Assembly (NCBI GenBank): GCA_020536535.1
Contig: JAHLWZ010000068.1
Span: 1-64,000 of the forward strand
DNA length: 64,000 nt
Source of the DNA: Pelomyxa schiedti
Taxonomy: Eukaryota > Protista > Evosea
Direction of reading: 5' to 3'
Positions 297 through 41,013 of this stretch are shown here, piece after piece. Numbering within the stretch: the first letter of the stretch is position 1; each line of letters opens with the position of its first letter. The notes beneath the pieces are model-generated. The model ran no database searches. It had not been told where the DNA came from and saw nothing but the letters and a program-made list of their open reading frames with translations. Both the position numbers and the translations under genes were made by a program.

Positions 297-306
297 ACAA
301 AACCGA

Positions 307-1816
307 ATGAATAGATCCGCTCTTACGGTGTTGGTGCTCCTGTGGTCGTGCTGTGTGTCGTCTCTTGTCGGTGCGAGTCGCTATCGTGGTTGCGCTCATG
401 TTAGATCTCATTTGTTTTTTTCAGTTACCTTGGCCGGCGAAGACACGTTCATCGACGAGCAGTTTGTTGCCCGTGTGAATGCTAAACAAGGAAAAACAGC
501 GTGGGGGAAGACGTGGACTTCTTCTTTATCATCGTGGGTGCGTTTTCTTTGGATCTGCTCTTCCCACTAATTTTGTTGAAGACTGCCACTTTGCCGAGAG
601 AGAAGGCTATTGCTCTTCTTGGCGGAAACGATCCATCGACTTTCGAACGTATTTACCATTTTGCCCAGATTTATGAGACTTACTGTAGTATAGCACTCCC
701 TGAAAAACAATTTGCTGAACTCGCGACTGCCCCTGATGCGTTTGATTCACGGACGAACTGGTACAACGACTCTTTCAGAAAGTACTCATCTAACCAACAC
801 AAAGGCCCCAATGCGCCACTATGTTACAGATTAGGGATCAAGCTGATTGCGGGTAAACTACGAACCTTTTGAAGAAAACTTATTTCATGACATAGGTCTT
901 GCTGGGCATTCGGAGCTGTAGAAAGCATGTCAGATCGAGAATGCATTTTCAATAACATAAATGTCACTGTGTGTACTGGCACTCCTCCATTTCCGCATTA
1001 ATATCAGTAGCTTTCGGCTGAAGATATGAATTCCTGCAGTGGGGCTGGCTCATGCAACGGAGGGGATCCAGCTCTGGCTTACAAGTACTGGGTGGAAACT
1101 GGGGTGGTCACAGAGACCTGCAGGCCGTACAGGTACGCTTGAACAATTTTTGACAACCGATTCACGAGTTTTCTCAGTTTGGCGGGGTGCGACCATCACA
1201 TAGAGAACAGCAGTAACCCTTGTGCTGAAGAGTGTGTTGGATCCTTTGTTATCAAATATTCACGTTATTTAGTCTTGAACCAACCCCTCCTTGTGTTGAG
1301 TCTTGTGTTGAGGGCAGTGGCCTGGTGTGGGCAAAAGATATATACAAGGGTGCAAGTTCTTATTCTATGCGTGGTGAGCAACAAATGATGGACGAAATTG
1401 CCAAAAACGGACCTGTAGAGGTAACTTTCATGGTGTTTGACGACTTCTTGACTTACTCTGGCGGGGTATGTTGACATAATGCATTACACATCACTCCATA
1501 CTAATTATCAGGAAGATATACTACCATGTTGAGGGGCGTTATGGTGGAAACCATTGCGTTAAAGTTATGGGTTGGGGAGTAGAAAACGATGTCAAATACT
1601 GGATAGTTGCCAACAGGTATGAAAATACATAATTACCACCTTTTAATGAACCTTCCTGCTTAGTTGGAATGAGCACTGGGGAGAGAAGGGTTTTTTCAGG
1701 TTTCTTGCCATTTCCATGTCTAAGCCCTTTGCTCACCAACGCACAGAATACTCAAAGGGACTAACGAATGTGGCTTTGAAAGTTCTGTTGTGGCTGGAAT
1801 CCCAGCATCTCTCTGA
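307..1816 (+). CDS. CTSB: Cathepsin B-like cysteine protease (papain family C1A), multi-exon
   Basis: Signal peptide; spliced APDAFDSRTNWPQC...[25 protein letters not shown]; occluding loop GCDHH; NGPVEVTF; GNHCVKVMGWG; YWIVANSWNEHWGEKGFF; NECGFESSVVAGIP, TGA at 1814-1816. Confidence 0.95.
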
Positions 1817-36490: not shown

Positions 36491-39400
36491 TCACATTAAT
36501 CTTGTCCATACAGCATGCTCCCCAACGTGTAAACTAGATCCCATAACAACAGAGTCCTTCGTACTGAACCAGTGAAGAGCCGAGCTGTTGCTGAGGTCTT
36601 TATCAAGGACCCATCCCTTGAAAGTGATTTTTTTGTCCCGCCCGTACTCAATGCGGCCACCATCAGACCAGTCGGTTCCTTCTTCTATTGTCACCAAGTT
36701 GTTACTCACCTGAGAAGTGTCTTCTTATTGAGGTTTGATTTTAAAAGTGAACTACCTGCAATTTTCGGCAACCACGAGTGCCTGTACTGCTTCGTAAATA
36801 CGTTCCGTTTAAGTTGTCTTCCCAGCTGCGGTGTGTCCATGTGACAACTTCATTTGGGTCCCTGCTGTTGCCTTGTGCAATTGCAGTGGGTGTTGACCTC
36901 CAGAGAAGTTGTTGAAGTGTACTGAGCGAAGTGTCCAGCATCCACCCTTCAAAGTAACATAGCCCATCACAGAAAGATATGTTATCGTTGAACATCCAGG
37001 AGCCCGGAGTTCCTTCATAGCTGAATACTCTGCCATTAGCTTCTACGAGCAAGTGTTGCTCACCCCTGAAAATAAATATCAAAGGTGTGGTAACTGGGAA
37101 GGGACACAAACCTTACGGTAGTGGCATCTTTGGTGTACAGACCTGCTAGTTCCTTGAAGTTTCCTTTACGGAGCTGAGTGGGAGGAGCAGCACTCCATGA
37201 CCCGTCACTGGAACGCCTCACTTGAACTTCATCAACTGTAAGAACAGCCGACTCCAGGAATGAAGGGTAGATGCTTCCTGGAACCCGTAAAAAGCGGTCA
37301 CTGGCTCCCCATGAGTTGATGCATTCTATTGTACTGGTGGGTTTTCTAAGCCAGTACGCAGCATGAACCAGATGGCTGCCGTGCTGGCCAGTTGGTGTTG
37401 TTCGCTGCCCAACAACAATGCCTCCCACAATGGGAACTTTGTCCACAACTGGTTCGTATGTGGGATATTGCAGCTGGCGCATCTGATCAGCGGAGTTTAC
37501 CAGTGTGTAACGAATTTTAAAGGTCATAAGAACAACTCCTCCCTTATCTTTGCCTGAGAACTTCATAGTTTTACCGATAACATTCATTGGGCCACAAAGG
37601 AAAGGATTGCCAACCAAACCTGTAATTTTTTTGCTCCCATTCTGGAGTTCAACTCTTCGATAAGGTGCACGAAATCCGTAGCCGCATCAAACCCAATCGC
37701 GATTACGGTAGAAGTTAGTGTAGCCAATTCACATTGTATGTTGTAGTCCAGACTGAGAAGCTGACACAAAGCACCCATGACACCCCACATGGTGCATGTT
37801 CCAAATCCACCTTGGTCTCCTCCGACTCCATCTTCCGCTAAGGGAGTGGAGGAAGGGGCTATACAAGAGAGGAAAGTGTTATTTAGGTGATAATGAAACT
37901 TTGTTGCCTTCAACCTGGATCAGTTGTTCTTCCCACTTCTACAATAGACGCAGAGCCTAACACTTTTTCTCGTTCCACCTTGGCATCGTAACCATAGAGC
38001 TTTAAAAGAAATGAATATATAAAATATATTTATATATTTTAAAAAACGAAATGGTCAAGGGTTTTAAAAAAAAAACCTTGCGCACTGCAGGTGGTGCTAG
38101 GCGGCCAGTTGGTTCTTTTTCCTCTATCACAACAATGCCCCTGGCTTGGCCATTTTTCCGGCTTTTGTGCATGTCGACGACGCAGAGCTTACCCCTGGCC
38201 AACAAACCGGTGTATCTCACGGTGTGACATTCCGAGGACGAGAACTTTGCGGTGATGTCTATCGCACCGTTGCGTCGGTTGTATGTCCCCGAGAGCGTCT
38301 TGGTTGGAGCTGACGGTACGTCGTTGTGGCATGTACCGCAAACGTTGTCATACTCATCAACCTAGAATGTACTGATGTTACTTTTCATTTTTAGGTTGGA
38401 ATTTGATATTGTGTTAGCTAGTTTAAGGTAATGGTGAAGTTCAAGACGCTGGCATTTTGGCGTTTAATTTTTTATTTGACTGCCGGAGTCGAGTGTGTTT
38501 GTTTGCCGTTTGGTGTGGAACATAGTGGAGTTGTAGTGAGGACTACACGGGAAATGGGAACATACAGTAAACGACAGAGCCCATCCTGCGAAGCAAAAGT
38601 CTGACCCCTCCCAACCAGTGCAGGCTCCCTTGTTATCTCTTCCTCCAATCTTGACAGACAACTGCCTCGCTCTTTAAAAAAAAAAAAGGAAAGTTTAGCC
38701 ATCAACAATCCACTTAGTATTACTTACAACGGGAGATTTTGTAAAACTACTCGCCAGTAGTCCACACCATCTGAAGCTTCCTTGCAATTCACATCACAAG
38801 CCATTTCTAATCCATCACCCTCGAGGTCGTAGTTCCAAAGCCACTCTGTTGTCTGGAACCCAAGCCGGAGGAAGAGTGAAATGGCAGGCCTGTTGGTCCC
38901 ACGACACTGTAGCATGATCTTGGCCAAATGCCACTGCCTTGTCATGTGGATGGCGAAGGCTATAAGTGCGCTACCAACCCCTGCTCCTCGGCAGGCTTCG
39001 CGCACTGCAACTTTGGTAAGGAGTGTATACTCTTTTTCACGCTGAAGGGCAATATATCCATTGACAACGTTTACTGGTTTGTAAGGAAGTTGAAAAACGA
39101 AATGAAGAGATTGATTGTACATTTTTTCACAGTGTAGATAGCAACATTGTTCCCTCGAAGAGCATTGTGGAAGTAGTTCGCTTCAAAGGGTTCGGAAAAA
39201 GAGTTCACCTCAATTTTAAGGACATCTTCTAGATCCGACTTGTGAAATGGTAATATCTTGAGAGCATCATCCGCTGGGAGATGTTGTAGAGCTCTATTTA
39301 TTATTTTATAACTCCTGAAAGCAGCTTGAGAGATTGCTTTTAAAAAAAAACATACACGTGAGCAAGTCTTGTGTAAGTTTCAAAGCTCTCTTGCACGAAA

Positions 39401-39968
39401 GGAGAGGAAGGTAAACCGATAACAGATTTGGTGAAGATGTGACACGGATTATGCACCAGTTCACAAATACAGCCGGAGCAGAGGTTATAGTTGTCACAAT
39501 TCTTGCAGGCATACCTTTAGGTTATTATTGTGGGTTTTCAGTTTAGAAAACGAACCTTACACCAACCACAGGGAAATGGCAGTTTGAACACAGTACACCT
39601 CTGTGAACTGAGTGCAATCTGGGAATACATGAGTAACCTTCAATGGGCGTCAGCCGCACGTGTCACACAGTGGCAAGCTTGTACTTCCTCGCATTCTTTG
39701 TTTTGTTGTAAAGCACAAAAAAAAATTTCCTGTCAAGCTCATTGTCCTCGCAACTTGGTCACCAAGCCAGAAGAAGTTGTGGGATGCTGCACAACAGAAA
39801 CCATCACACCCCGCCACGTGCCCCTCAGCACGAATAGGCTGTTTTGCCTGAGGCTATCTCCTTGTTGGCAGCTTCTAACCTGAGAAACTGATTGGCCAAG
39901 TCGGCAGATCTGGAAGCCCCAAAATTGCTGTAAAAACAAGAAAACTCCAAGCGACTAACCACCGACAT
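36491..39968 (-). CDS. Multidomain protein: ZZ zinc finger - GNAT (RimI-like) acetyltransferase - beta-rich module - papain-like cysteine protease - beta-rich C-terminal repeats
   Basis: ZZ HRGVLCSNCHFPVVGVR|YACKNCDNYNLCSGC...HNPCHIF; GNAT LEDVLKIEVNSF...VAVREACRGAGVGSAL...NRPAISLFLRLGF; protease DQGGFGTCTMWG...GSHLVHAAYW...CINSWG. Introns from the ZZ domain to the catalytic-Cys exon are phase-consistent. The N-terminus and two downstream junctions are uncertain. Confidence 0.7.
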
Positions 39969-41013
39969 GCAAGGTTCGGTGATGCGTTTTGTGACGATAT
40001 TGGAGGGAATAGTAAATTATCAACAATAATAAACTTGTATTTTGTGTGCGGTGTATTTTACAGTGTTGTTTTGTTGTTAACGTGTAAGATAGAGCAGTTG
40101 TTGAATCTGCGATTCGCTTCGAAACAACTTCAGAGACAGTCGGTCAAGTCTGAACAAAATGAAAAACGTGAGAAACTAAAAGCAAAGAAGGTATGCAGCT
40201 TATTTCCTTTCACAAAGCATATTATTATCTGTTTGATGGGTGGCCTCCTTGATTTTTTTTCCCCCTTTTTATTTTCTGATCCTACAAGGCAATGGAGAAG
40301 GGCAACATGGATGGTGCTCGCATTTATGCAGAAAATGCCATAAGAGAAAAAAGCATGGCTCTCAATTACCTTAAACTATCTTCCCGTATAGATGGTGTTG
40401 CCTCCCGTGTTGAACAAGCAATAAGAATGCGCGTAGTGAGTTACTTTGTTCATTGTGAAGTGTGATTAACAAACTCCTTCCTTTGTGCAGGTCACAGGCT
40501 CTATGTCGGGTATTGTAAAATCATTGGATAAGGCCATGAAGACTATGGACCTTGCTCAGGTTCGTTCCCAATATTTGACATTCCTGTTCTCACAGTGCGT
40601 GTAGGTGACCCAAGTCATGGATCGCTTTGAAAAGCAGTTTGAGGATTTGGATGTCCAAGGTGCCTATGTTGAAAAAACCATGTCCAAGTCATCGGCACTT
40701 TCCACACCCGCTTCTGAGGTATACAATACCTAATTCTAACTGGAAGTCACCTCACCATTTCCACCTTCTCTCAAAAAGGTCGACCTTCTTCTGGAACAAG
40801 TAGCTGATGAACACGGATTAGAGCTGGCCGAAGACTTGCATGATGTACCAATAAAACCACCAGTACTAAGAACCCCCGAGCACCAGCAGGACGAGTTGAC
40901 AGCCAGGCTTGAGAAGTGTGCAAGCCAACACAAACAACTAAACAGTTATCTTACCTATCAAAACAGGCTCAAAACAGGGGGGAGCTAAGTCACACTGCAC
41001 CGCGTGTAAATAG
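39967..41013 (+). CDS. CHMP1: ESCRT-III subunit CHMP1 (Did2/Vps46)
   Basis: Spliced [19 protein letters not shown]...[21 protein letters not shown]...[10 protein letters not shown]...[12 protein letters not shown]...[13 protein letters not shown]...[16 protein letters not shown]...[11 protein letters not shown]. Confidence 0.95.

Follow-up and report, generated by a model that had tools for sequence, protein, structure and literature searches.

Gene organization

The window analysed here is a stretch of 64,000 nucleotides (positions 1 to 64,000, forward strand) of the 80-kb contig JAHLWZ010000068.1, which belongs to the nuclear genome of Pelomyxa schiedti, an anaerobic amoeba (assembly GCA_020536535.1). 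Its minus strand carries the gene Pelo_848, which very probably encodes a ZZ zinc finger, a GNAT acetyltransferase-type domain and a papain-fold peptidase domain as a single protein of approximately 830 residues. From the N- to the C-terminus, the predicted chain consists of a short leader, the ZZ finger, a GNAT domain of the RimI/N-terminal acetyltransferase (NAT) type, a Cys-rich module of ~160 residues, the peptidase domain of ~195 residues and two repeats. The GenBank product of the locus is KAH3767281.1 (782 residues, "hypothetical protein Pelo_848", here P0001), which shows 100% identity to the largest exon. No hydrophobic 19-mer exceeds a Kyte-Doolittle average of 1.3 and the chain contains no transmembrane-like segment. 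Pelo_848 is probably a 12-exon gene for a soluble protein of this layout in which the peptidase domain is a competent catalyst.

Splicing of the gene was rebuilt independently of a preliminary description of the locus, by enumerating all GT-AG introns that join neighbouring frames without a stop codon. Twelve exons and 11 GT-AG introns on the minus strand form a stop-free coding sequence of 827-845 codons, the length varying with the choice of first exon. The introns are, in order, 41, 41, 41, 47, 56, 204, 77, 56, 59, 46 and 46 nt long. The last 729 residues of the spliced model are identical to P0001 residues 54-782. The preliminary description had held that the open reading frame fragments at this locus join in phase, and every intron that it named, together with a 106-nt exon, is borne out by the sequence.

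All exons are given here on the minus strand, in the order of transcription. The candidate first coding exon (39660..39742), drawn from the enumeration of ATG/GT-AG paths, has uncertain boundaries: it starts at ATG 39742 or ATG 39694, which share a frame, and stop-free paths leave it at donor 39659 (CAC/gtgcgg) or, alternatively, 39684 (GAA/gtacaa). ZZ exon 1, running from the first CxxC to GVR, spans 39556..39618 (or starts at 39637 if the first intron is 47 nt) and was placed by the spliced Pfam ZZ score. An in-phase intron (39555-39515) separates it from ZZ exon 2 (39356..39514), which carries YACKNC...CSGC...H...CH and a linker and was assigned by Pfam and by alignment with the zinc ligands of HERC2. 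Two introns that are absent from the preliminary list follow. The first (39355-39315; 41 nt, GTATGT...TTTCAG) joins the ZZ finger to the GNAT domain in phase; the second (39120-39074), which is needed for the frame, lies inside the GNAT domain. The N-terminal half of that domain, preceded by a linker, occupies 39121..39314, and the C-terminal half, identified by Pfam Acetyltransf_1, TIGR01575 and alignments with the PDB entries of RimI and Ard1, occupies 38728..39073.

The GNAT exon is followed by a 56-nt intron (38672..38727; GTAAGT...TTTAAAG), which is also present in P0001. The apparent GNAT open reading frame closes with a TAA formed by bases 2-4 of this intron, so the stop overlaps the GTAAGT donor and lies within the intron, as had been proposed. 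The 106-nt exon (38566..38671; ARQLSV...ALSFT) and an in-phase intron of 204 nt with a GTATGT donor (38565-38362) lead to exon 7, which encodes the Cys-rich middle module (38077..38361) and was recognized by its codon log-odds. Next are an in-phase 77-nt intron (38076-38000), an 85-nt exon that links the module to the peptidase domain (37915..37999; LYGYDAK...RTTDP; supported by its codon score and present in P0001) and an in-phase 56-nt intron (37914-37859). The peptidase domain is encoded by two exons (37620..37858 and 37112..37560), and the C-terminal repeats, recognized by their similarity to each other, by two more: repeat 1 at 36756..37065 and repeat 2 with the TGA stop (36493-36491) at 36491..36709, separated by an in-phase intron (36755-36710). 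The junctions after AKKLQ and DATT had been considered doubtful. Both resolve with standard sites that agree with P0001, namely the introns 37619-37561 (acceptor GAAG) and 37111-37066, but the donor after DATT lies 5 nt further downstream than had been assumed: the splice is at AAG/GTTTGT and not at the preceding GTAAGG, so that Val-Arg is added to the chain.

5' end and correction of the GenBank model

The ZZ frame is closed by a TGA at 39662-39660, and downstream of this stop it contains no ATG. One further intron opens the frame from ATG 39742 or 39694; it would be 41 nt long at 39659-39619 or 47 nt long at 39684-39638, the latter with a GTACAA donor, as in the GNAT intron. Depending on the first exon chosen, 4-28 residues precede the zinc finger. 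The preliminary description had left approximately 120 codons at the start of the gene unaccounted for; this stretch is likely non-coding and is most likely a shared promoter or untranslated region. ATG 39968 was considered as a start codon and rejected: it overlaps the annotated ATG of a divergent Snf7 gene (39967, plus strand), and path enumeration favours 39742/39694.

P0001 starts at ATG 39512, which lies inside ZZ exon 2 in a different frame. From the donor at 39355, which both models share, P0001 stays open by using an acceptor at 39274, whereas the ZZ frame pairs this donor with the TTTCAG acceptor at 39315. Residues 1-53 of P0001 (window 39356-39512, minus strand) come from ZZ exon 2 read out of frame and miss the finger. 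ATG 39512 and acceptor 39274 should probably be replaced by the upstream exons and acceptor 39315. The GenBank model of Pelo_848 is thereby corrected at its N-terminus and the zinc finger is recovered.

One gene or several

The claim that a single polypeptide is encoded is based on the phase-correct splice sites, the missing in-frame ATGs and the codon bias. The exon for the N-terminal half of the GNAT domain lacks an in-frame ATG, yet its product aligns with RimI from RimI chain residue 2; the domain must therefore borrow its start from upstream. Judged from the sequence, the ZZ frame is the sole biologically sensible source of that start. Beyond the GNAT domain, no in-frame ATG is found across model residues 258-380, a region that includes the 106-nt exon and the 62 codons at the start of exon 7, and the next one downstream of the GNAT domain is at 38172. 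The GNAT exon ends in phase 2 and exon 7 starts in phase 0, and the 106-nt exon has exactly the length needed to bridge the two. The 62 codons that precede the exon-7 ATG have a codon log-odds score of 9.5 bits, which exceeds all 392 of the 392 stop-free out-of-frame control stretches and falls at the 20th percentile of true coding stretches in the window. The 85-nt exon scores 13.2 in the model frame as opposed to -11 and -16 in the other two, and the 204-nt intron is negative in all three. The joins from the GNAT domain to the protease are identical in P0001, which comes from an annotation made with Augustus and refined with PASA/EVM (PMC8887013).

Several points weigh against a single chain. 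Codon usage does not clearly favour one frame for the 106-nt exon: the model frame scores 3.4 and the runner-up 2.1. The 204-nt intron is far longer than the other ten (41-77 nt) and contains an AATAAA (38476-38471). Homologue searches with P0001 and with its residues 54-330 returned no transcript-derived protein, and the GenBank model, in which the ZZ exon is spliced to another acceptor (39274), could be a purely ab initio prediction. These points would fit two or three adjacent genes that have been wrongly merged, comprising a ZZ-GNAT gene ending at the TAA at 38726-38724, a separate protease gene and possibly a gene for the ZZ finger only. Such an arrangement would explain why the GNAT open reading frame terminates in a natural stop and why the 204-nt gap with its AATAAA separates it from the next large exon, and the only homologue of the protease part (P0003, see below) is a stand-alone protein of 385 residues without ZZ or GNAT. 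A first exon for a separate protease can also be devised, contrived as it is, from ATG 38585 and a weak donor (GTC/gtttac). Set against this are the two ATG-less regions described above, the second ending in 62 codons that outscore every control, the consensus splice sites in the correct phase and the published annotation, which likewise fuses the GNAT domain with the protease part. Wrongly merged genes are thus quite unlikely, and the single 12-exon gene is retained as the preferred model.

Two features of the introns could allow for shorter products. The AATAAA in the 204-nt intron could be an alternative 3' end, giving an isoform with the ZZ finger and GNAT domain only. If the 56-nt intron were retained, translation would terminate precisely where the GNAT fold ends, such that splicing could determine whether a ZZ-GNAT protein or the full fusion is made.

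ZZ domain

The ZZ domain (39605-39427, minus strand) has the conserved domain PF00569 when its 54-residue stretch is spliced (32.7 bits, cut-off 21.4; E-value: 6.3e-8). ZZ exon 2 alone has an E-value of 0.049 and becomes significant only after it is joined to exon 1; this improvement supports both the intron 39555-39515 and the ZZ frame. All eight zinc ligands (CSNC, CKNC, CSGC and H-x3-H) align with those of the HERC2 ZZ domain. The closest solved relatives are HERC2 (E-value: 4.9e-10) and p62 (2e-8), followed by MIB1, PRT1 and KCMF1. The earlier assignment to the ZZ family, and its kinship to domains that read protein N-termini, is therefore upheld, with the HERC2/p62 group nearest.

In p62, residues D129, D147 and D149 line the pocket for an N-terminal arginine; each is needed for ligand binding, and D129 and D149 hold the alpha-amino group (PMC6197226). 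The Pelomyxa finger has Ser, Asn and Asn, respectively, at these positions and so does not have the acidic pocket of the p62 type. It retains the eight zinc ligands and the GxRY motif of the p62/SQSTM1 and HERC2 ZZ domains and differs from p62 in this replacement of the acidic residues. The finger appears to be genuine, and its reading of a free, charged N-terminus is doubtful.

ZZ domains are also found beside, or in complex with, acetyltransferases, as in p300/CBP (in which ZZ is next to the histone acetyltransferase domain), Ada2-Gcn5 and ZZZ3-ATAC. These are histone lysine acetyltransferase systems, and none of them is known to include a protease. The Pelomyxa GNAT domain is instead NAT/RimI-like.

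GNAT domain

The GNAT domain has the conserved domain PF00583 (Acetyltransf_1; 47.5 bits, cut-off 20.7; E-value: 2.5e-12) and covers RimI chain residues 2-122. The top NCBIfam model is TIGR01575 (rimI; 59.7 bits, under the equivalog cut-off of 86.4) and the closest PDB relatives are RimI, Ard1, SSO0209, Naa50 and Naa30. The preliminary assignment of a RimI/NAT-like GNAT is thus in agreement with the Pfam match, with rimI as the best NCBIfam model and with N-alpha-acetyltransferases as the best PDB matches. The acetyl-CoA motif RGAGVG (R-x-x-G-x-G; the family pattern is Q/R-x-x-G-x-G/A) is retained at the aligned position, in the exon for the C-terminal half. Weak matches to the regulatory GNAT PanZ/PanM were also obtained with both Pfam and NCBIfam.

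In RimI, Glu103 is the proton acceptor and Tyr115 the proton donor (PMC3347575). Glu and Tyr occupy these positions in both RimI (9mto) and Ard1 (4pv6); the Pelomyxa domain has Gln (38909-38907) and Phe (38873-38871), with the spacing of 12 residues kept. The domain is thus a GNAT without the canonical RimI catalytic set, and acetyl transfer by it is in doubt. It resembles RimI, Ard1, Naa10, Naa50 and Naa30 in fold coverage, in the acetyl-CoA motif and in its best NCBIfam and PDB matches, and differs from RimI and the N-alpha-acetyltransferases in its rimI score below the cut-off, in the Gln/Phe pair and in being fused to other domains. The domain may still be active: some N-terminal acetyltransferases use a Glu of the alpha1-alpha2 loop, and the stretch PFEANY in the Pelomyxa domain is presumably located at this loop.

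Peptidase domain

The peptidase domain (37820-37180, minus strand) is approximately 195 residues long. Its first exon carries GDQGGFGTC, with Gln at 37814-37812 and the putative nucleophile Cys at 37796-37794; its second exon carries His (37365-37363), Asn (37317-37315) and Trp (37311-37309). In the 845-residue model, the Cys, His and Asn are Cys462, His586 and Asn602. A HMMER pass over 1.84 billion representative proteins returned one true relative, P0003, a stand-alone open reading frame of 385 residues from a EukProt transcriptome. Residues 391-584 of P0001 and 97-284 of P0003 are 29% identical (E-value: 5e-22) and share the invariant blocks GDQGG..C, HGSHL.HA and C.NSWG. The Gln, Cys, His and Asn are conserved between the two proteins in clan-CA order and within the most conserved blocks, and the Trp is conserved too. 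The motifs DQGGFGTC, HLVHAA and CINSWG, from which a papain-type Gln/Cys/His/Asn set had been proposed, are thus present and are conserved in the sole homologue.

The other three phmmer matches cover short stretches only, and the regions checked in those proteins belong to bacterial repeat domains of the Ig-like or InlB type. The stretch SDGSWSAAPPTQLRKGNF (window ~37160-37215, minus strand; P0001 575-592) resembles the DGSWSFTP...L.DGNY hairpin of the bacterial Big_13 Ig-like adhesins P0002 and P0004, and the phmmer E-values of these two proteins are inflated because of it. Homologue searches with P0001, P0003 and P0001 residues 54-330 returned the queries themselves or nothing, and no related loci were found in metagenome, viral or prokaryotic genome contigs.

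As in family C1 (cathepsins, papain, Der p 1 and falcipain), the order of the catalytic residues is Gln...Cys...His...Asn-Ser-Trp, with Gln-Cys, His-Asn and Asn-Trp spacings of 6, 16 and 2. These spacings equal those of papain (Gln19, Cys25, His159, Asn175 and Trp177). The motifs DQG..G[ST]C...GAL, HA and NSWG most resemble those of C1 endopeptidases. At the level of profiles, the domain has no match in Pfam, NCBIfam, PHROGs or PADLOC. In particular, Peptidase_C1 (PF00112) gives no Pfam match up to an E-value of 1 for the exons, P0001, P0001 residues 225-640 or P0003; C39 (PF03412) gives no Pfam match either, and the likeness to that family is structural only. Neither a two-sequence profile nor the His-Asn block by itself retrieved a C1 chain from the PDB sequences with HMMER, the matches being chance ones only. 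A tblastn comparison of the domain with a cathepsin B gene in the same window gave noise only and says little, because the motifs of that gene are split by introns.

The structural evidence comes from the homologue. An AlphaFold2 model with P0003 as the target has a pLDDT of 66.9 and a pTM of 0.67 (pLDDT ~54-65 around the His); in this model, a long helix begins at the Cys, and strands carry the His and Asn. The model agrees with the papain fold, in which an N-terminal helical lobe with its first helix starting at the nucleophile precedes a beta-barrel lobe. In Foldseek, ComA and PCAT1 rank highest through their C39 peptidase domains (probability 1.0; E-values: 1.7e-3 to ~2e-3). When the top Foldseek matches were re-aligned, residues 11..181 of the P0003 model mapped onto residues 20..219 of cathepsin S, and the Gln and Cys therefore occupy papain-type positions. 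The model was also compared with 48,161 representative chains using VIA-align, a search that does not depend on Foldseek and in which Z values within 1 of each other are regarded as tied. All 50 of the top 50 rows are papain-fold cysteine peptidases, with Z up to 10.2. The highest is the pseudomurein endoisopeptidase PeiR (Z 10.2; root-mean-square deviation 3.2 over 127 aligned residues), followed by PCAT1 and other C39 domains (Z 8.6-8.9, PCAT1 8.9; 8.6-9.0 at a deviation of 3.2-3.5 with the re-aligned Foldseek matches included), the C1 peptidases Der f 1 (Z 8.6) and falcipain-3 (Z 8.4) and staphopain C of the staphopains (Z 8.3). Cathepsins B, C, H and X, Josephin, UfSP, ATG4 and viral and bacterial deubiquitinases (DUBs) are also among these 50 rows.

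Three observations weigh on the other side. AlphaFold gave an unusable model of the Pelomyxa peptidase domain itself (pLDDT 41.5), for which the Foldseek matches are meaningless; no sequence method ties the domain to any peptidase family; and the fold rests on a homologue of ~30% identity, with Foldseek E-values of only ~2e-3 and Z values of 8-10, near the range that the tool calls common. Each Z value is modest when taken singly. Because the match list is uniform, the matches cover the model from the Gln past the Asn-Ser-Trp and the catalytic residues are conserved, a papain fold is nonetheless a sound call for the family as modelled on P0003. The papain-like protease named in the preliminary description is in this way borne out by the model of the homologue and the structure searches, and applies to the Pelomyxa domain through homology. 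On the modelled fold, the two proteins form a new, nearly orphan family in clan CA, and membership in C1 and in C39 fails at the profile level.

The domain can be compared with both families. It shares with C1 the residue order and spacings given above and structural Z values of 7.8-8.6 over 147-156 residues (P0003 model). It differs from C1 in having no profile match, in its length (~195 versus ~215 residues), in having neither signal peptide nor propeptide and in its position in the middle of a predicted cytosolic multidomain protein. Like the C39 domains of ComA and PCAT1, its best Foldseek matches, it is a compact papain-fold domain inside a larger protein. It differs from them in showing no sequence similarity, in having no ABC-transporter context, in being eukaryotic with introns and in having Asn-Ser-Trp rather than the C39 third residue.

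The breadth of the structural matches bears on the reaction catalyzed. PeiR (Z 10.2), Alr0975 (Z 8.3), Josephin, UfSP and the viral tegument and bacterial DUBs are neighbours of the P0003 model, and ZZ domains are common in proteins of the ubiquitin system (HERC2, MIB1, KCMF1, PRT1 and p62). The domain could thus be another type of Cys-His papain-fold enzyme, such as a DUB or ubiquitin-like protein isopeptidase, an amidase, or a transpeptidase or acyltransferase of the phytochelatin-synthase/PeiR type, with the GNAT domain serving mainly as an acetyl-CoA-binding regulator. The retention of the CoA motif in a GNAT that lacks the general base and acid of RimI, and the weak matches to PanZ/PanM, are consistent with such a role. 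However, the motifs are most like those of C1 endopeptidases; Z values within 1 are tied, so that the fold search does not separate the classes; and no ubiquitin-binding feature or ubiquitin-like domain was detected in the Pfam scan. This alternative is the less likely one, a competent cysteine peptidase being the preferred reading.

Middle module and C-terminal repeats

The Cys-rich module of ~160 residues between the GNAT and peptidase domains has no family match in Pfam, NCBIfam, PHROGs, PADLOC or the PDB. Its motif CGTCH (38340-38326, minus strand) gives weak matches, driven by CXXCH, to Cytochrome_C7 (Pfam E-value: 0.11) and the decahaem protein UndA (PDB E-value: 0.049) and is probably a chance occurrence or a zinc site. 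The two tandem C-terminal repeats (36494-37125, minus strand) are ~90 residues each and show 35% identity (E-value: 4e-9), and Pfam and PDB searches found no relatives of them. The middle module was considered as a third copy of this repeat and rejected (BLASTP E-value: 0.26; hhalign probability 0.6%).

Proposed function

In the proposed mechanism, the Cys of the peptidase domain would attack a peptide or isopeptide bond, assisted by the His, Asn and Trp, with the Gln contributing the oxyanion hole. Binding of substrate or partners would fall to the ZZ finger and the two repeats. The GNAT domain would bind acetyl-CoA and may act as a weak or non-canonical transferase.

The preliminary description had gone further and proposed that the protein reads, cleaves and acetylates N-termini. 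In such a coupled processing machine, the ZZ finger would dock a free N-terminus, the papain-fold domain would cleave and the GNAT domain would acetylate the old or the new N-terminus. The solved ZZ domains nearest to that of Pelomyxa do read N-termini (HERC2 bound to the N-terminus of H3 or SUMO1, p62, PRT1 and KCMF1), the nearest GNATs are the N-alpha-acetyltransferases listed above, the acetyl-CoA motif is kept, the catalytic set of the peptidase is complete and all of the parts are in one frame. Against this, the three p62 aspartates that are each essential for binding of the N-terminal amine (PMC6197226) are replaced by Ser, Asn and Asn; Gln and Phe stand in place of the catalytic Glu103 and Tyr115 of RimI (PMC3347575), a pair that Ard1 also has; and the TIGR01575 score (59.7) falls short of its cut-off (86.4). 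The peptidase alone keeps its full set of residues, and the coupled machine is unlikely in the form proposed.

A bifunctional, post-translational "cleave-and-cap" enzyme on a single chain, in which the peptidase would cut a substrate captured by the ZZ finger and the repeats and the GNAT domain would acetylate the N-terminus so created, has no known counterpart and seems improbable. The neutralized ZZ pocket (Asp to Asn/Ser) might be tuned to uncharged, acetylated termini.

No other protein with a ZZ-GNAT-papain layout was found in the sequence searches (the 1.84 billion representative proteins and the metagenome, viral and prokaryotic contigs), and no paper was found that mentions the combination of ZZ, GNAT and papain fold. 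The statement that no protein of this architecture has been described is consistent with these protein, contig and literature searches. The fusion is known from one species, and two of its three domains are without residues that their closest relatives need. The locus adds a family of papain-fold cysteine peptidases that is invisible to sequence profiles and has two members among the 1.84 billion representative proteins. If the chain is made as predicted, a zinc finger of the terminus-binding type, a domain of the N-acetyltransferase type and a protease would be present on one polypeptide, and whether proteolysis can be coupled in cis to modification of N-termini could then be tested directly.

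Neighbouring genes

Pelo_848 lies between a pyruvate:ferredoxin oxidoreductase gene, which it meets tail-to-tail, and the Snf7-family gene, with which it has a head-to-head region of ~225 bp in common. Window positions 39966-39969 form a CATG palindrome, and the overlap of the annotated Snf7 ATG (39967, plus strand) with the minus-strand ATG 39968 falls within it. The cathepsin B gene (window 300-1700, plus strand) has very short exons, and its catalytic Cys motif is interrupted by introns (IRDQADCG/SCWAFGA).

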